A stretch of 64,000 nucleotides of DNA from Phaeosaccion multiseriatum (GCA_965112735.1 OZ218965.1:434001-498000); one strand, 5' to 3'; shown: positions 1-59,605, numbered from the stretch's first letter. Made by a program: numbers and translations. The notes: generated by a model from the letters alone, not told the origin.

Positions 1-13025
<13,025 letters not shown>

Positions 13026-49304: not shown

Positions 49305-51186
49305 CTCCCTCCCTCCCTCCCTCCCTCCCTCCCTCCCTCCCTCCCTCCCTCCCTCCCTCCCTCCCTCCCTCCCTCCCTCCCTCCCTCCCTCCCTCCCTCC
49401 CTCCCTCCCTCCCTCCCTCCCTCCCTCCCTCCCTCCCTCCCTCCCTCCCTCCCTCCCTCCCTCCCTCCCTCCCTCCCTCCCTCCCTCCCTCCCTCCCTCC
49501 CTCCCTCCCTCCCTCCCTCCCTCCCTCCCTCCCTCCCTCCCTCCCTCCCTCCCTCCCTCCCTCCCTCCCTCCCTCCCTCCCTCCCTCCCTCCCTCCCTCC
49601 CTCCCTCCCTCCCTCCCTCCCTCCCTCCCTCCCTCCCTCCCTCCCTCCCTCCCTCCCTCCCTCCCTCCCTCCCTCCCTCCCTCCCTCCCTCCCTCCCTCC
49701 CTCCCTCCCTCCCTCCCTCCCTCCCTCCCTCCCTCCCTCCCTCCCTCCCTCCCTCCCTCCCTCCCTCCCTCCCTCCCTCCCTCCCTCCCTCCCTCCCTCC
49801 CTCCCTCCCTCCCTCCCTCCCTCCCTCCCTCCCTCCCTCCCTCCCTCCCTCCCTCCCTCCCTCCCTCCCTCCCTCCCTCCCTCCCTCCCTCCCTCCCTCC
49901 CTCCCTCCCTCCCTCCCTCCCTCCCTCCCTCCCTCCCTCCCTCCCTCCCTCCCTCCCTCCCTCCCTCCCTCCCTCCCTCCCTCCCTCCCTCCCTCCCTCC
50001 CTCCCTCCCTCCCTCCCTCCCTCCCTCCCTCCCTCCCTCCCTCCCTCCCTCCCTCCCTCCCTCCCTCCCTCCCTCCCTCCCTCCCTCCCTCCCTCCCTCC
50101 CTCCCTCCCTCCCTCCCTCCCTCCCTCCCTCCCTCCCTCCCTCCCTCCCTCCCTCCCTCCCTCCCTCCCTCCCTCCCTCCCTCCCTCCCTCCCTCCCTCC
50201 CTCCCTCCCTCCCTCCCTCCCTCCCTCCCTCCCTCCCTCCCTCCCTCCCTCCCTCCCTCCCTCCCTCCCTCCCTCCCTCCCTCCCTCCCTCCCTCCCTCC
50301 CTCCCTCCCTCCCTCCCTCCCTCCCTCCCTCCCTCCCTCCCTCCCTCCCTCCCTCCCTCCCTCCCTCCCTCCTCCCTCCCTCCCTCCCTCCCTCCCTCCC
50401 TCCCTCCCTCCCTCCCTCCCTCCCTCCCTCCCTCCCTCCCTCCCTCCCTCCCTCCCTCCCTCCCTCCCTCCCTCCCTCCCTCCCTCCCTCCCTCCCTCCC
50501 TCCCTCCCTCCCTCCCTCCCTCCCTCCCTCCCTCCCTCCCTCCCTCCCTCCCTCCCTCCCTCCCTCCCTCCCTCCCTCCCTCCCTCCCTCCCTCCCTCCC
50601 TCCCTCCCTCCCTCCCTCCCTCCCTCCCTCCCTCCCTCCCTCCCTCCCTCCCTCCCTCCCTCCCTCCCTCCCTCCCTCCCTCCCTCCCTCCCTCCCTCCC
50701 TCCCTCCCTCCCTCCCTCCCTCCCTCCCTCCCTCCCTCCCTCCCTCCCTCCCTCCCTCCCTCCCTCCCTCCCTCCCTCCCTCCCTCCCTCCCTCCCTCCC
50801 TCCCTCCCTCCCTCCCTCCCTCCCTCCCTCCCTCCCTCCCTCCCTCCCTCCCTCCCTCCCTCCCTCCCTCCCTCCCTCCCTCCCTCCCTCCCTCCCTCCC
50901 TCCCTCCCTCCCTCCCTCCCTCCCTCCCTCCCTCCCTCCCTCCCTCCCTCCCTCCCTCCCTCCCTCCCTCCCTCCCTCCCTCCCTCCCTCCCTCCCTCCC
51001 TCCCTCCCTCCCTCCCTCCCTCCCTCCCTCCCTCCCTCCCTCCCTCCCTCCCTCCCTCCCTCCCTCCCTCCCTCCCTCCCTCCCTCCCTCCCTCCCTCCA
51101 TCCCTCCCTCCCTCCCTCCCTCCCTCCCTCCCTCCCTCCCTCCCTCCCTCCCTCCCTCCCTCCCTCCCTCCCTCCCTCCCTCCCTC
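49305..51186 (+). repeat. Near-perfect (TCCC)n tract of about 1.9 kb
   Basis: Only two visible interruptions (about 50371 and 51100). Confidence 0.97.
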
Positions 51187-52285
51187 GCTTTCCCACTCCC
51201 TCCCTCACTCCCTCCCTCCTTCCCTTCCCCCCTCCCTCCTTTCCTCCCTCTGTCCCTCTCTCACACTCTCGCTCACTCACTCACTCAGTCCCTAGAGAAG
51301 CGAGATGAGTCACTCGCCGACTCTTTCACTCCCTCCCTCCCTCCGTTCCTCCTTCGCTCCCTCCCTCCATCCCTCCCTCCCTCCCTCCCTCCCTCCCTCC
51401 CTCCCTCCCTCCCTCCCTCCCTCCCTCCCTCCCTCCCTCCGTCCGTCCGTGCCTGCATTTTTCTGTCCCTCCCTTCCGTCTCTCCCTCCCTCTCTCCCTC
51501 CCTTCCTCCCCTCCTCCCTCCCTCCCTCCCTCCCTCCCTCCCTCCCTCCTTCCCCCCCTCCCTCCCTCCCTCCCTCCCTCCCTTCCTCCCTCCCTCCATC
51601 CCTTCCTCCCTCCCTCGCTCCCTCCCTCCCTCCCTCCCTCCCTCCCTCCATACCTCTGTTCCACCTACATCCCATCCTCCCTCCCTCCCTCCCTCCCTCC
51701 CTCCATACCTCTGTTCCACCTACATCCCTTCCTGACTCCCTCCCTCCCTCCGCCCCTCACTACTTCTCTCTGTTCCTCCGTCCTGCCGTCACGCCCACCT
51801 TCCCTCCGTCCTTTTGTCCCGGCCTCCTTCCCCCCTTCCCTTCTTCCCTCCGTTCCTCCCTCCCTCGCTCCCTTGCTCCCTCGCTCCCTCCCTCCCTCCC
51901 TCCCTCCCTCCCTCCGTCCCTCCGTCCCTCCGTCCCTCCCTCCCTCCCTCCCTCCCTCCCTCCCTCCCTCCCTCCCTCCCTCCCTCCCTCGCTCCCTCCC
52001 TCCCTCCCTCCCTCCTCCTCCTCGTTCTCCTCCTCCTCCTCCTCCTCCTCCTCCTCCTCCTCCTCCTCCTCCTCCTCCCCCTCCTCCCCCTCCTCCCCCT
52101 CACCCTCCTCCTCCTCCTCCTCCTCCTCCTCCTCCTCCTCCTGGTCCTCCCCGTCCTCCTCCTCCTCCTCCTCCTCCTCCTCCTCCTCCTCTCCCTCATT
52201 CTCCTCGGGTGACAGAATAGCTACTGCGTCGCCCGTAGGTAAGACAGAGACAGGGATGGTCATGCTTGAGGTGAAAGTGCATGAG

Positions 52286-52803
52286 GTGAGTGAGTGAGTG
52301 AGTGAGTGAGTGAGTGAGTGAGTGAGTGAGTGAGTGAGTGAGTGAGTGAGTGAGTGAGTGAGTGAGTGAGTGAGTGAGTGAGTGAGTGAGTGAGTGAGTG
52401 AGTGAGTGAGTGAGTGAGTGAGTGAGTGAGTGAGTGCCTGAGTGAGGGAAAGAGAGAAGGGAGGGAGGGAGGGAGGGAGGGAGCGAGGGAGGGAGGGAGG
52501 GAGGGAGGGAGGGAGGGAGGGAGGGAGGGAGGGAGGGAGGGAGGGAGGGAGGGAGGGAGGGAGGGAGGGAGGGAGGGAGGGAGGGAGGGAGGGAGGGAGG
52601 GAGGGAGGGAGGGAGGGAGGGAGGGAGGGAGGGAGGGAGGGAGGGAGGGAGGGAGGGAGGGAGGGAGGGAGGGAGGGAGGGAGGGAGGGAGGGAGGGAGG
52701 GAGGGAGGGAGGGAGGGAGGGAGGGAGGGAGGGAGGGAGGGAGGGAGGGAGGGAGGGAGGGAGGGAGGGAGGGAGGGAGGGAGGGAGGGAGGGAGGGAGG
52801 GAG
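52286..52803 (+). repeat. (GTGA)n followed by (GGGA)n at the 5' end of an intron
   Basis: GTGAGT donor expanded to about 37 GTGA units (52286-52435), then (GGGA)n at about 52460-52803. Confidence 0.95.
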
Positions 52804-53343
52804 TGAGGGACGGAGGGAGCGAGGGAGCGAGGGAGAGGGGGAGCGAGGAAGGAGGGACGAAGACGGGGAAAGAGGGAAGGAGGGTGGGAGGGGGGGGAGG
52901 GAGGGAGGGAGGGAGGGCATGGGGGTTGATTTGGTGACGCTGTAGAGAATGGGAATATGGGCTCAGTTTGTTCACCTGGGGCCTGGGGAGGGGAGGAGTG
53001 AGGAAGAGGAGGGCTGTGCTCACTCCACATTCGCCAGTCCTGAAGGACGGAAGGAAGGAAGGAAGGAAGGACGAAAGGAAGGAAGGAAGGAAGGAAGGAA
53101 GGGGCAGATGGAGACAACACTGCACTGCTGTACCACCAACTGCTGCGGTTGCTGCTCGTTGTTGTGAAGCTTTGCGTTTTTTTGCTGTACCTCATTTTTC
53201 ATTTTGCTTGCGATTGCTGACATACTGTACACAACACACAAACAGGGCCAGGTGTGGCAGGTGCAGACCGACGTCATGAAGATTGTGTCTGTAGGGGCGG
53301 ACAGTGTCGTTGCGGTGACGGACATCAGCTCGGGAGAGCTCAT

Positions 53344-55318
53344 TGTTGAAAGTCAGTATTATGTCAATGGCCCAGGCCCAGGCAAATACGGTGAGAAACG
53401 GTGCGTGGCCCGTTTCTCACTCACCTCCCAGCAGGTTGGTCGTTTAGGATGGCTCACGGATAAAGCTAATAGAGACAAGGCTGGCTGCCAGGCTGGCTTT
53501 GGGGTTGCTATTACCTTGTCCATGCGGCTACTCCTATCCTAGGTGGAGAGCAACGTGACTCTTTACAACCCCAAAGAATCCCGAAGGCAGCTGACCTTGG
53601 CCAAGAGGCTCAGGCAGCAGCTCGGTAGCTTTGAGTTTGCCGGGAGCGGTGCCTTACAGCGGGCATGGCTTTCGAGTGTGGCAGCAGTACGGATGTTGCT
53701 GTTACACGGAAATTGCTGCTGGAGCTTGGTGGGCAGTGGAGATGGAGAATTGCCGGGAGCGGTGCCTTACAGCGGGCACGGCTTTCGAGTGTGGCAGCAG
53801 CACGGATGTTGCTGTTACACGGAAATTGCTGCTGGAGCTTGGTGGGCCGTGGAGATAGAGAATTGCCGGGAGCGGTGCCTTACAGCGGGCACGGCTTTCG
53901 AGTGTGGCAGCAGCACGGATGTTGCTGTTACACGGAAATTGCTGCTGGAGCTTGGTGGGCCGTGGAGATAGAGAATTGCCGGGAGCGGTGCCTTACAGCG
54001 GGCATGGCTTTCGAGTGTGGCAGCAGCACGGATGTTGCTGTTACACGGAAATTGCTGCTGGAGCTTGGTGGGCCGTGGAGATAGAGAATTGCCGGGAGCG
54101 GTGCCTTACAGCGGGCACGGCTTTCGAGTGTGGCAGCAGCACGGATGTTGCTGTTGCACGGAAATTGCTGCTGGAGCTTGGTGGGCCGTGGAGATAGAGA
54201 ATTGCCGGGAGTGGTGCCTTAGTCAGCGGGCATGGCTTTCGAGTGTGGCAGCAGCACGGATGTTGCTGTTGCACGGAAATTGCTGCTGGAGCTTGGTGGG
54301 CCGTGGAGATAGAGAATTGCCGAGAGCGGTGCCCTACAGCGGGCACGGCTTTCGAGTGTGGCAGCAGCGCGGCTGTTGCTGTTGCACGGAGCTTGGCGGG
54401 AGACAGAGAAGGATACTCGCAAGGCTGCTTTAGGGACTGTCTGGGTGCCTTGTAGGCACACCAGTAAACACTTGAGCAGTCAGCATTAGTGGTGCGCAAC
54501 GAGGCTTTGGCAACGCTGGTGGCGAGTAGGAGTGGAGATAGAGAATTGCGCGGGTGAGTTTGAGTCATGGGATGTTCTCATCCGTGAGCCTGTGTGGGTG
54601 AGTTTGAGTCGTGGGGTTTTCTCACCAATACAGGAGGGTGTGTGTTGGAGGAGCGGTCGCACACACCTGGGTGAGTTTTGCATATTTCTCATCCGTTTTT
54701 ATTGGAAGCAACATGGAGGCTTTTGCTACAAGTCGAGCTTTAGTAGGCGAACCCGCTTTGAGTTGCGTGGGGACACGCAATAGTTTAGTTCAGGGGGATG
54801 TTAGAAGTGCAGGGATGGCTGACGGGGATGTTGAAAGTCAGTATTATGTCAATGGCCCAGGCCCAGGCAAATACGGTGAGAAACGGTGCGTGGCCCGTTT
54901 CTCACTCACCTCCCAGCAGGTTGGTCGTTTAGGATGGCTCACGGATAAAGCTAATAGAGACAAGGCTGGCTGCCAGGCTGGCTTTGGGGTTGCTATTACC
55001 TTGTCCATGCGGCTACTCCTATCCTAGGTGGAGAGCAACGTGACCCTTAACATACGACTTCTAACAAGACCGTTGCTAGAAGACGAGCCCCCCCCCCCCA
55101 CCGCACATAGTGGAGAGAAGTAACTCGCAGTCTGAGAATCAGCATCATGGGCCTGCAAGCTGGTAACAGTTTTCGCCGAAAAATACGCTTTTTCACAAGC
55201 GACAGCTAAGGTTCGAACTCACAACTAGCCTTGTTAGAAGTCGTACTTTTGCTAGAGACACCTGCCCTCTGAATTCAGACCGGGAGGTATCAGTCTAGCA
55301 AAAGTACGACTTCTAACA
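53344..55318 (+). mobile_element. Non-autonomous LTR retroelement A (TRIM-like) with an extra 3' palindromic module
   Basis: 224-bp LTRs 53344-53567 and 54829-55052 (TG..CA; 2 mismatches seen). GGGGA purine run before the 3' LTR. Internal 113-bp array 53633-54390. TSD TCAT at 53340-53343 and 55319-55322. No gag/pol ORF. Confidence 0.92.
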
Positions 55319-55837
55319 TCATGATGAGCCTAATAGGGCACGCCTACGCTGTGTTACTGCAGCAGGCCTTCGACACCAAGAAGATCCTCTCGGCCTCCAG
55401 CGATGGCACCCTAAGGTGAGGCCGGACAGAGGAAGAGAGAGAGAGAGAGCGGCGTGACTTTGCTCTGCCGACCGCGGAGAGGGGGTGGGGAGGGTACTCA
55501 GAGGAGAGGAGCGGCACAGTGGAGAGGCCTACGGGTAGGGAGGTACTTGGGTATACACCCCCACCTCCTCCCCCCTCCCCCCTCACCCCCATCCACTGCC
55601 ATCCTCTGCAGATACTGGAGGTGGGTGGACTCTCGCAAGAAGCGTGAACACAAGTACCATATTGTGTCTGCAGGGGAGGGCCTCAGCCGAATTGCAGCCA
55701 AGCATGACGTGTCAGTCAGAGACCTCACGCGCTGGAGCGGAGTCACGGACCCGCGGTGGTGGTGGGTCACAACGGGTGCGTGTGGTGCAAGAGCAGAGGG
55801 GCAGATGGGGAAGTTATTTATTGACTTAATAGGCATC

Positions 55838-57596
55838 TGTAAAACGACGTACGCACGACCGACATGCGCTGTCGCCTACAGATAGGATAGAACTAGACAC
55901 ACGGACAAGGTAACAGCAACCCCAAAGCCAGCCTAGCAGCCAGCCTTGCCTCTATTAACTTATCGCATGCTAGTCCTAAACGACCACCTTCGCACATAGG
56001 ATAGTGAGAGCCACGCCACCCGTTCTCACTGTATCTGCCTGGGCCTGGGCCATTGACTTATGGCCCATCTCATGTGAGGCCTTCCAACATCCCCAATGCC
56101 TATCCCGGGGCCTTCCAACATCCCCAATAGCTATCCGCCACTTCCAACATCCCCTTGACAAGACTGTTGCGTGTCCCCACGCAACACAAGCGGATTCGCC
56201 TACTGAAGCTCGACTGTCGCACAAGCCTCCATGCTGCTTCCAAAAAAAGAAAACGGATGAGCATTATGCAACACTCACCCAGATGTGTGCGACCGCTCCT
56301 CCCACACACACCCCCTGTATTGATGAGAAAGTCCCACGACTCAAACTCACCCACACAGGCTCACGGATGAGAACATCCCACGACTCAAACTCACCCGCGC
56401 CATACCTTTCTCCACTCCTACTCGCCACCAGCGTTGCCAAAGCCTCGTTGCGCACCCCTAATGCTGACTGCTAAAGTGTTTACTGGTGTGCCTACAAGGC
56501 ACCCAGACAGTCCCTAAAGCAGCCTTGCGAGTATCCTTCTCTGTCTCCCGCCAAGCTCCGTGCAACAACAACATCCGTGCTGCTACCACACTCGAAAGCC
56601 GTGCCCGCTGTAGGCACCGCTCTCGGCAATTCTCTGTCTCCACTGCCCACCAACCTCCAGCATCCATTTCCGTGCAACAACAACATCCGTGCTGCTGCCA
56701 CACTCGAAAGCCGTGCCCGCTGTAGGCACCGCTCTCGGCAATTCTCTGTCTCCACTGCCCACCAACCTTCAGCATCCATTTCCGTGCAACAACAACATCC
56801 GTGCTGCTGCCGCACTCGAAAGCCGTGCCCGCTGTAAGACACCGCTCCCGGCAACTCTCTCTCTCCACTGCCCACCAACCTCCAGCATCCATTTCCGTGC
56901 AACAACAACATCCGTGCTGCTACCACACTCGAAAGCCGTGCCCGCTGTAAGACACCGCTCCCGGCAATTCTCTGTCTCCACTGCCCACCAACCTTCAGCA
57001 TCCATTTCCGTGCAACAACAACATCCGTGCTGCTGCCACACTCGAAAGCTGTGCCCGCTGTAGACACCACTCCCGGCAATTCTCTGTCTCCACTGCCCAC
57101 CAACCTTCAGCATCCATTTCCGTGCAACAACATCCGTGCTGCTGCCACACTCGAAAGCTGTGCCCGCTGTAGACACCACTCCCGGCAATTCTCTCCCTCC
57201 ACTCCCGCCTCTCCGTGCAACAACAACTCCGCTGCTGTCGCACGTCGTACGGCACTGCTTATGTGCCGCACTGTGCTCCCCTAACACGCCTCTTCCTTCC
57301 CTGCCTAAGCCTTTGGCTAAGTGCTGCTTTCGGGCCTTTGGGGTTGTAAAACGACGTACGCACGACCGACATGCGCTGTCGCCTACAGATAGGATAGAAC
57401 TAGACACACGGACAAGGTAACAGCAACCCCAAAGCCAGCCTAGCAGCCAGCCTTGCCTCTATTAACTTATCGCATGCTAGTCCTAAACGACCACCTTCGC
57501 ACATAGGATAGTGAGAGCCACGCCACCCGTTCTCACTGTATCTGCCTGGGCCTGGGCCATTGACTTATGGCCCATCTCATGTGAGGCCTTCCAACA
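55838..57596 (-). mobile_element. Non-autonomous LTR retroelement B, same family, inverted orientation
   Basis: 252-bp LTRs 55838-56089 and 57345-57596 (TG..CA, identical by eye). TSD CATC at 55834-55837 and 57597-57600. Internal 112-113-bp array at about 56555-57240. The interior is the diverged reverse complement of element A. Confidence 0.94.
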
Positions 57597-57811
57597 CATC
57601 ACCCTAAAAAACTGGAAGTGTGTGTGTAGCAGAGTAGAGCAGAGGGGATGGGAGGGGAAGGGAAGGGAGGGGTGAGGGAAGTGGCAGTCACCCAGACTTG
57701 AGACCACACGCACGCACGCACATAGGCATATATAGAAACGCAGGGACGCACACATATCGCACACATATATCTAAACATCCAAAGCACATGCACACACACG
57801 GCATACCCATC

Positions 57812-58304
57812 GCTCCCTCCCTCCTTCCCTCCCTCCCTCCCTCCCTCCCTCCCTCCCTCCCTCCCTCCCTCCCTCCCTCCCTCCCTCCCTCCCTCCCTCC
57901 CTCCCTCCCTCCCTCCCTCCCTCCCTCCCTCCCTCCCTCCCTCCCTCCCTCCCTCCCCCCCTCCCTCCCTCCCTCCCTCCCTCTCCCTCCCTCCCTCTCT
58001 CCCTCTCTCCCTCCCTCCCTCCCTCCCTCCCTCCCTCCCTCCCTCCCTCCCTCCCTCCCTCCCTCCCTCCCTCCCTCCCTCCCTCCCTCCCTCCCTCCCT
58101 CCCTCCCTCCCTCCCTCCCTCCCTCCCTCCCTCCCTCCCTCCCTCCCTCCCTCCCCCTCCCCCTCCCTCCCTCCCTCCCTCCCTCCCTCCCTCCCTCCCT
58201 CCCTCCCTCCCTCCCTCCCTCCCTCCCTCCCTCCCTCCCTCCCTCCCTCCCTCCCTCCCTCCCTCCCTCCCTCCCTCCCTCCCTCCCTCCCTCCCTCCCT
58301 CCCT
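57812..58304 (+). repeat. (TCCC)n tract
   Basis: About 490 bp, directly visible. Confidence 0.95.
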
Positions 58305-58590
58305 CGTACATACGCACCCCAACGCCACCGCTACGAACAAAATCTTCCCCTCTATCGCTCTAGTCACCGCAAGGTCCTCCAGCACAGTGGGGGCTCCTGC
58401 GCTGGCGGATGGTTCCCATAGGCGTCTCGTTTGGCAGAACGGAACGGACTGTGAAGAAGGTACCAGGCAGGGACAGTGGCTCCGTTGATGGTGAGGTCGC
58501 GGAGGTGGGGCCACAAGGGAACGTCGCCGAAGGAGTGCTCGATCCGTGTGGCGTTGAAGTGGGTAGGAGCGAAGGGAGGCCAAACAGAAA

Positions 58591-58664
58591 AGGGGGGGGG
58601 AGCTGGGATAGGCTCAATTACGTATTAAGGGGGGGGGAGCTGGGATAGGCTCAATTACGTATTA
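58591..58664 (+). repeat. 37-bp tandem duplication
   Basis: AGGGGGGGGGAGCTGGGATAGGCTCAATTACGTATTA x2. Confidence 0.9.
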
Positions 58665-59392
58665 TTAGGTAGGCAGGACAGTAAGTCAATGATGTGGGAC
58701 GCGGCCTTTTTGGGGGCTGGTTGGCCCCTCCGAATTACACTCCTGAACCCGTATAGACCAAGTGGATAGCTCTCCTTAAACAAGGAGGCTGTCCAGGGTC
58801 TTAGGGTGGGATAGCCCTTGTTATTTTAATACACTTGGTGCCAGCTTTGGACTCTTCTCTCTCCCTTATTGGGACCGGAACGCAGCGCCTAGCTTGGGGG
58901 TACCTTCCTCCTCTTAGGCAGAGGGAGGTAGCGGCCCCACACAAGGCAGGCACCCAAATCGCCGTGGGAAGCGACGAGACCACGGCCATGGAGCTCGACG
59001 ACGGAAGGGGAGAAACTCTTCGCTCCAGTGGCACTGTGGAGTCTCATAGATGTTGCACAAGTTGGAATGCGGTCTGTAGTCCTCATCTGGAGCTGGCCCC
59101 TCTTGCATGAACTGTTTCAGTCGCAGGTGGTGGAAAGAGGGAAGGAGGGTTGATAAGGGTCAATACAGACAACATCGAAGTACATACGATCTCCTAGCTG
59201 TTGGTTATCCTGTGTGTGCATTGGCGGCGACTCCACACACAGGGTGGCTCACCACGCCTGCCAAAGGCGGCGTCGCTGAGGAAAGTCCACTCCACCCACG
59301 CCTGATCAGTAGGCCGTTGGTAGAGTGGGTCTTCATGTAGCCGACGCGTGGAAGCCGCTCCGACTCCTTAGCGGCCATGCCGACCACCCGCG

Positions 59393-59605
59393 TGTGGAAA
59401 GTCAGTCGTATGTCAGTGGCCCAGGCCTAGGCAACGCAGTGAGAAACGGTGCCCGTTTCTCACCATCCTCCTGCAGGTGGTCGTTTAGGACAGTGCATAG
59501 ATAGGCTAATAGATACAAGGCCGGCTGTCAGGCTAGCTTTGGGGTGCTGCTGCCTTATCTGTGTGTCTAGTCCGTTTCGTGGAGGTCTAAGCACGACTTT
59601 CCACA
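59393..59605 (+). mobile_element. Solo LTR of the same family
   Basis: TGTGGAAAGTC...GACTTTCCACA ends. Shares GGCCCAGGC, the GTGAGAAACGG/CCGTTTCTCAC hairpin, GGTCGTTTAGGA and CTTTGGGGT with LTR A. No matching TSD. Confidence 0.85.

Follow-up and report, generated by a model that had tools for sequence, protein, structure and literature searches.

Candidate Tf1-like self-priming in non-autonomous long terminal repeat retrotransposons of the alga Phaeosaccion multiseriatum

Results

Two non-coding elements carry a site complementary to their own long terminal repeats

A 64,000-nt stretch of the genome of Phaeosaccion multiseriatum (C16:434001-498000, referred to as the window in the following) contains two young, non-autonomous long terminal repeat (LTR) retrotransposons, which consist of LTRs, a primer-binding site, a non-coding body with an array of 113-bp repeats and a polypurine tract. 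Element A is located on the plus strand (53344-55052, 1709 bp) and element B on the minus strand (55838-57596, 1759 bp). All genome-wide counts given below were taken over the 67-Mb, 22-contig genome. The 224-nt LTRs of A (5' LTR 53344-53567, 3' LTR 54829-55052, both +) differ by two mismatches at LTR positions 217 and 221, and the 252-nt LTRs of B (5' LTR 57345-57596, 3' LTR 55838-56089, both -) are identical. In both elements they have TG..CA termini of the form TGTTG...ACA.

Downstream of either 5' LTR, TGG is absent. Instead, the last two LTR bases (CA) and the next nine form the site CAACCCCAAAG (A: 53566-53576, +; B: 57336-57346, -), which is exactly complementary to the motif CTTTGGGGTTG inside the LTR, at LTR position 154 in A (53497-53507, +) and 163 in B (57424-57434, -). 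In A, the motif is preceded by the AT-rich, TATA-like box GATAAAGCTAATAG (53459-53472, +), the TAATAG of which begins 30 nt upstream of it; in B, it likewise lies 30 nt downstream of TAATAG. Judged by this position, CTTTGGGGTTG is predicted to be the first 11 nt of the transcript and the start of the repeat region R. A complement of equal or greater length, anchored at the LTR junction with an offset of at most 2 nt, was obtained in only 3 (A) and 10 (B) of 5000 LTR shuffles, with a range of 2-10 in 5000 per lineage. Junctions of the form ACAACCCCAAAG were found 81 times as exact matches genome-wide, compared to 7 matches for a control pattern.

A third lineage (LS) is represented in the window by a solo LTR (59393-59605, +) with the motif CTTTGGGG-TG at 59537-59546, and full-length LS copies with a primer site are present in the loci L028 and L037. 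The LS motif has lost one T, which costs the duplex the two base pairs closest to the end of the LTR. Two pairs are gained at the opposite side through CT after AAAG in the primer site and a change from G to A upstream of the motif, and the duplex again comprises 11 bp in a shifted position (AGCTTTGGGGT / ACCCCAAAGCT).

These results bear on an earlier, preliminary description of the same window, which had reported the lack of a TGG-type primer site and the complement at the LTR junction of both full elements. Both features are found in the sequence, and other genomic copies keep the complementarity, the loss of which it had named as a refutation. The near-identical LTR pairs that had been taken as a sign of recent activity are 99-100% identical and accompanied by abundant near-identical copies. 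The target site duplications (TSDs) are indeed 4 bp long in both elements, namely TCAT for A (53340-53343 and 55319-55322) and CATC for B (55834-55837 and 57597-57600), as is the CATA of a further copy (L031); the TCAT duplication, however, encloses A together with a 266-bp fold-back repeat fragment and not A alone. The solo LTR had been placed one nucleotide too far downstream, at 59394, and its flanks, CGCG and CCTC, contain no matching target duplication.

Family structure and aberrant copies

The internal region of A (53568-54828, +) is non-coding and contains the 113-bp tandem array at approximately 53633-54390. Neither a retroelement domain nor a Pfam match above the cut-off was detected in the seven longest sense open reading frames (ORFs) of the A and B internal regions. 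Across the family, element size is 1.2-4 kb and varies with the copy number of the 113-bp array; the start-to-start spacing of the LTRs in other copies is approximately 1.25-4 kb. The preliminary description had regarded the elements as non-coding parasites resembling TRIMs (terminal-repeat retrotransposons in miniature). The non-coding character holds, but with 1709 and 1759 bp both are larger than the classical TRIMs and exceed the miniature size of less than approximately 1 kb; the term TRIM-like fits their mode of working, not a strict membership in that group.

Copies of the family are numerous and young: genome-wide, at least 45 A-type and at least 49 B-type near-identical LTR matches occur, mostly with 94-100% identity, and the 5' LTR of A has 100% identical copies elsewhere in the genome. 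In front of the 3' LTRs, the polypurine tracts end with ..GACGGGGA before TGTTG in A and ..CATTGGGGA before TGTTGG in B, the purine runs of both closing with GGGGA; the purine-rich stretch GGCTGACGGGGA of A (54817-54828, +) directly adjoins the 3' LTR. The combination of polypurine end and LTR start, GGGGA followed by TGTTGGAAG, is repeated three times in the polypurine region before the 3' LTR of B (56090-56175, -) and twice before that of A (54780-54828).

Some copies of the A type are rearranged. An aberrant copy in L009 (approximately 1501-1800; C8:1601801-1602102) consists of a full LTR, ACCCCAA, LTR positions 163-224 for a second time and a normal primer site. The duplicated segment covers R and the unique 5' region (R-U5), and the join lies inside primer-site/motif sequence. 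In a minimal derivative in L024 (C10:647989-648474), two LTRs are only 38 nt apart, separated by ACCCCAAA and a polypurine region, and in L026 (C9:1529141-1529870) two A LTRs face each other, each followed by ACCCCATTCAATCG.

A Ty3/gypsy element carries a covarying pair

Scans of the genome for reverse transcriptase (RT) and integrase revealed several Ty3/gypsy classes. One of them, G2, comprises elements of approximately 13 kb, as estimated from pairs of LTR starts and ends, with a 200-nt LTR that starts with TGTTGGAAGGCCTCAG, ends with TTTTACA and follows GGGATAGGCATTGGGGA. B and G2 are 90% identical over the 47 nt ahead of the LTR together with its first 40 nucleotides, and the terminal TTTTACA is common to both. 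The Ty3-like G2 pol encodes RT, RNase H, a 3'-5' exonuclease-like domain and integrase. Its RT has the Ty3 RT as nearest solved relative, and the RT-RNase H part shares at most 39% identity with the matches listed from a large protein collection, none of which is a close relative. A metagenome search with the G2 RT recovered one distant contig of 1.5 kb. In the 2332-amino-acid G2 ORF we detected no match to the Chromo domain, which is present in other gypsy classes of this genome. The exonuclease-like domain (DNA_pol_A_exo1, E 4e-15) is situated between RNase H and integrase (L042, ORF 1974-8969, residues 1233-1418) and is found likewise in a second copy (L035); a Ty3/gypsy element with such an accessory domain is unusual.

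Directly after the 5' LTR, two G2 copies (L049, L052) contain ACCCGTTTTGAC. The G2 LTR holds AAACGGGTT, 29 nt downstream of TATAA, which pairs with AACCCGTTT. When the LTRs are aligned with MAFFT, the motif CTTTGGGGTTG of A and B matches the position of CAAACGGGTTC of G2, and at the aligned positions four double changes (three T-A to A-T and one G-C to C-G) separate G2 from the non-autonomous elements, with five pairs unchanged. Judged from this alignment, pairing is kept by compensatory change at a homologous LTR position, with a different sequence in G2. All four lineages (A, B, LS and G2) have a spacing of 28-30 nt between TATA-like box and motif. Minimum-energy folds of the predicted RNAs from R-U5 to the primer site show the latter paired with the 5' end, for A, B and LS regardless of whether a 30-nt leader is added and for G2 only when it is not; Z-scores range from -2.1 to -4.6 across lineages.

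Based on the shared sequence, G2 is probably the helper of B, and A and B are most likely mobilised by Ty3/gypsy proteins acting in trans. The autonomous element with the same LTR ends that the preliminary description had asked for is available in G2, which shares the polypurine region and contains a covarying motif/primer-site pair. Four other associations of coding sequence with these LTRs were discarded. A copia element between two A-type LTRs (the 7-kb copy in L031) has its own LTRs and a 5-bp TSD, TGTTC, and is a nested Ty1/copia insertion. A class-4 gypsy ORF behind the B body in L035 has no DNA in common with B and marks a junction of two elements. The ORF right behind a B LTR in L042 is not B's own, as this B copy is nested inside a G2 copy. 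Finally, the class-5 gypsy element in L037 possesses its own 237-nt LTRs and a palindromic site, and the adjacent LS LTR is a separate element.

Integrated hairpin units retain the primer-site/motif junction

Several B-type LTRs do not continue into the normal leader but into the reverse complement of LTR positions 1-173, which comprise the unique 3' region (U3) and the motif, with the primer site as the exact start of the inverted copy. The resulting junction ACAACCCCAAAGCCAGCC, corresponding to ACAACCCCAAAG continued by the complement of LTR sequence located upstream of the motif, occurs 15 times genome-wide compared to 0 times for the control. It passes straight into the LTR complement, with no additional primer-derived bases. 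Perfect 4-bp TSDs border three of the five fully read units (L038 774-1544, ATCC; L039 3086-2606, CCTG; L040 964-1388, CCAA). Four of the five have an inverted arm that runs to LTR position 1, and in the fifth, L038, it runs to an upstream GGGGA/TGTTGGAAG site; both the LTR start and the upstream polypurine-like site are start points of plus-strand DNA. In L038 and L039, upstream GGGGA/TGTTGGAAG repeats mark the beginning or end of the unit, which suggests that these repeats serve as alternative plus-strand start sites. The same hairpin arrangement is found with a 77%-diverged A-like LTR in L041. For G2, the predicted junction ACAACCCGTTTGCAAGCC has exactly one occurrence, overlapping a G2 LTR end (C16:506580-506607) within the candidate G2 hairpin at C16:506275-506794, where approximately 0.002 chance matches would be expected for an 18-mer in this genome.

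The simplest reading of the hairpin units is that primer site and motif pair during reverse transcription: a plus strand ending in the primer site would hybridise with the motif within its own LTR and be elongated, with subsequent integration of the product. We consider the chances slightly better than even that the units of LTR, primer site and inverted U3 are integrated fossils of strong-stop DNA which was self-primed via the pairing that primes the RNA. If so, the genome would hold a natural in vivo record of both sites annealing in reverse transcription and would reveal a built-in cost of self-priming, with about one in five junctions in the family being a dead-end hairpin. Fold-back repeats with TG..CA termini, such as the one joined to A, could likewise originate from units of this kind.

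The presence of units with a full inverted U3 in the same family might also be taken to mean that the complementarity is a relic, left by an inverted LTR fragment beside the 5' LTR that was deleted down to 9-11 nt and has no present function. In a relic, a length of exactly 11 bp would not be retained in A and B as well as in LS, where a shift makes up for the lost pairs, nor would the complement be rebuilt with another sequence at the same place in G2. Moreover, the hairpin units themselves are best explained as products of the pairing, as their arms end at plus-strand start points. This origin is therefore barely plausible.

The motif has no tRNA context

ARAGORN identified no tRNA gene in the window, and the 67-Mb genome contains no canonical T-loop at a distance of 5-35 nt downstream or 3-20 nt upstream of the 9-mer CTTTGGGGT. 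These distances refer to T-loop consensus patterns; an Rfam tRNA search scored organelle tRNAs only and gave no loci. The findings agree with the view of the preliminary description that the primer site does not derive from a host tRNA.

The motif may bear a distant likeness to the anticodon loop of proline tRNA. An alternative is a primer drawn from the host, either a tRNA fragment or another small RNA that terminates in CTTTGGGGT(TG), much as copia and Ty5 prime with internal parts of initiator tRNA; the copy in the LTR would then be incidental. Priming by half-tRNAs is known in Ty1/copia lineages (PMC6317226). We regard a primer supplied in trans as distinctly improbable, since the 9-mer is, by the T-loop patterns, without tRNA-like context anywhere in the genome and the hairpin junctions lack extra primer-derived bases. 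It would also leave unexplained why LTR motif and primer site changed jointly in G2 and why the duplex shifted in LS.

At the place of the primer site, other LTR families of this genome contain a perfect palindrome: CGACAATTGTCG in a copia element (L031 6547-6558, -), GAACTAGTTC in gypsy class 5 (L037, approximately 6575-6584, -) and ATAATCGATTAT in chromovirus class 3 (L043, approximately 587-598).

Insertion site, RNA data and neighbouring repeats

Excision of 53344-55322 restores an open WD40-like reading frame, which locates A in a host coding exon. The flanks 53281-53343 and 55323-55416, joined with one TCAT, encode the open frame ..SSGELMMSLIGH..SASSDGTLR, consistent with a very recent insertion. 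Four metatranscriptome runs from one study yielded contigs of A and B and none covering their single-copy flanks.

The 266-bp fragment fused to the 3' LTR of A inside its TSD (55053-55318) is unrelated to the element. It belongs to an abundant fold-back repeat with the ends TGTTAGAAGTCG...CGACTTCTAACA, nested hairpins, a C-run and a core containing GGTTCGAAC, which is also present in L041 (2018-2554) and L031 (1-400 and 7950-8301). The full copy in L041 (2018-2554) has TG..CA ends, 234-nt arms and a 79-nt loop, with CGCG on either side. The fold-back repeat may be descended from a hairpin LTR unit. Long simple repeats of the (GGGA)n / (CCCT)n type with an 8-nt period occupy the flanking region at 50000-52920 and 57820-58300, and those around 50370-52917 make inverted arms of 460-474 nt.

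Discussion

The arrangement of motif and primer site in A and B is best read as Tf1-like self-priming, and on the sequence evidence presented here we assign this reading a probability of roughly 0.7. Transcription would begin approximately 30 nt after the TATA-like box, at CTTTGGGGTTG, and the 5' end of the transcript would fold back across 69-90 nt of R-U5 and pair with CAACCCCAAAG adjoining the 5' LTR. RNase H of the helper would then cut after the duplex, and the resulting 11-nt RNA would prime minus-strand DNA, as in Tf1 of Schizosaccharomyces pombe. By the same pairing, any DNA strand ending in the primer site could anneal to the motif of its own LTR and give rise to a hairpin unit of LTR, primer site and inverted U3. 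With the primer and its site both lying in cis, every lineage is free to have a pair of its own, as is observed.

Several observations weigh against self-priming or weaken the case for it. The covariation is based on three lineages from one genome, and there is none among the copies within each lineage, as these are too young and too alike. The G2 duplex comprises only 9 bp, with an extra leader the G2 fold favours another structure, and no inverted G2 LTR start lies beside the single G2-type junction. The hairpin units do not establish the 5' end of the RNA as the primer. A T-loop consensus may miss atypical tRNAs and other small RNAs, and the RNA runs consist of contigs, which can show neither starts and ends nor strand and may include carried-over DNA.

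The pairing might alternatively be a conserved RNA or DNA structure with a role in packaging, dimerisation or strand transfer, and minus-strand synthesis might start from another primer. Covariation and folds prove selection on the pairing only and not its function, and the transcript start at the motif is deduced from its position. Nevertheless, the paired site adjoins the last base of the 5' LTR, the position that a minus-strand primer has to occupy for the LTR to be regenerated, and no alternative primer site is apparent there, neither TGG nor a tRNA-like match. In addition, the duplex has the 11-bp length of the Tf1 primer duplex, and the spacing between TATA-like box and motif is that expected for a transcript start. 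A role other than priming is therefore unlikely in our view.

Self-priming of A and B would mean that non-autonomous elements can carry a cis-encoded pair of primer and primer site unlike that of their probable helper, which frees them from the host tRNA as well as from a sequence match with the helper. In the integrated hairpin units, the pairing can be read out in a natural setting, which is unusual. Annotation pipelines that seek tRNA primer sites will miss or misclassify such families. Their activity has sufficed to interrupt a host coding exon in the window.

To our knowledge, self-primed reverse transcription has been proven experimentally only for Tf1 of fission yeast, and the other cases in fungi, vertebrates and some plants are deduced from sequence. 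The elements described here resemble Tf1/Tf2 and the Tf1/sushi group in the lack of a tRNA primer site, in the 11-nt site that adjoins the 5' LTR and complements the LTR at the expected transcript start, in the 69-90 nt of R-U5 with internal stem-loops between both sites and in a probable Ty3/gypsy helper. In contrast to Tf1, transcript start and RNase H cut are predicted from sequence and the host is an alga. The candidate helper G2 also departs from the Tf1/sushi group, as it has no detectable chromodomain but a 3'-5' exonuclease-like domain, and its RT-RNase H remains at or below 39% identity among the matches listed. Besides Tf1, for which it is established, self-priming has been predicted for Tf2, Maggy, Skippy, Cft-1, Boty and others (PMC6934838). 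Known or predicted cases extend over fungi, vertebrates, mosses and a plant lineage, with predictions for the Tf1/sushi group, the Tcn1 clade of mosses and the TAR copia lineage; among the plant elements surveyed, 12% were predicted to self-prime (PMC6317226). As for our elements, the prediction for the Tcn1 chromoviruses of mosses and the Ty1/copia elements of the TAR lineage is made from sequence alone, by the complementarity of LTR and primer site (PMC6317226). Those elements are autonomous and reside in land plants, whereas A and B are non-autonomous and their pair differs from that of the probable helper.

With TRIMs, the family has in common the short LTRs (213-252 nt), the lack of coding capacity, the high copy number, the TSDs and the presumed mobilisation in trans. 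Classical plant TRIMs are smaller than approximately 1 kb and carry a tRNA-Met primer site; the family described here measures 1.2-4 kb and has a self-complementary primer site. The hairpin units recall the snap-back self-priming of minus-strand strong-stop DNA of human immunodeficiency virus 1 in vitro, in which a strand of DNA turns back onto a complementary stretch of its own and is prolonged into a hairpin. Unlike these products, the algal hairpins are integrated with 4-bp TSDs and involve the primer-site/motif pair instead of the TAR hairpin. The preliminary description knew of no comparable report in stramenopiles, and a limited literature search likewise returned no paper that joins self-priming with stramenopiles, diatoms, oomycetes or brown algae. 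While the mechanism itself is known, the algal host group is new.

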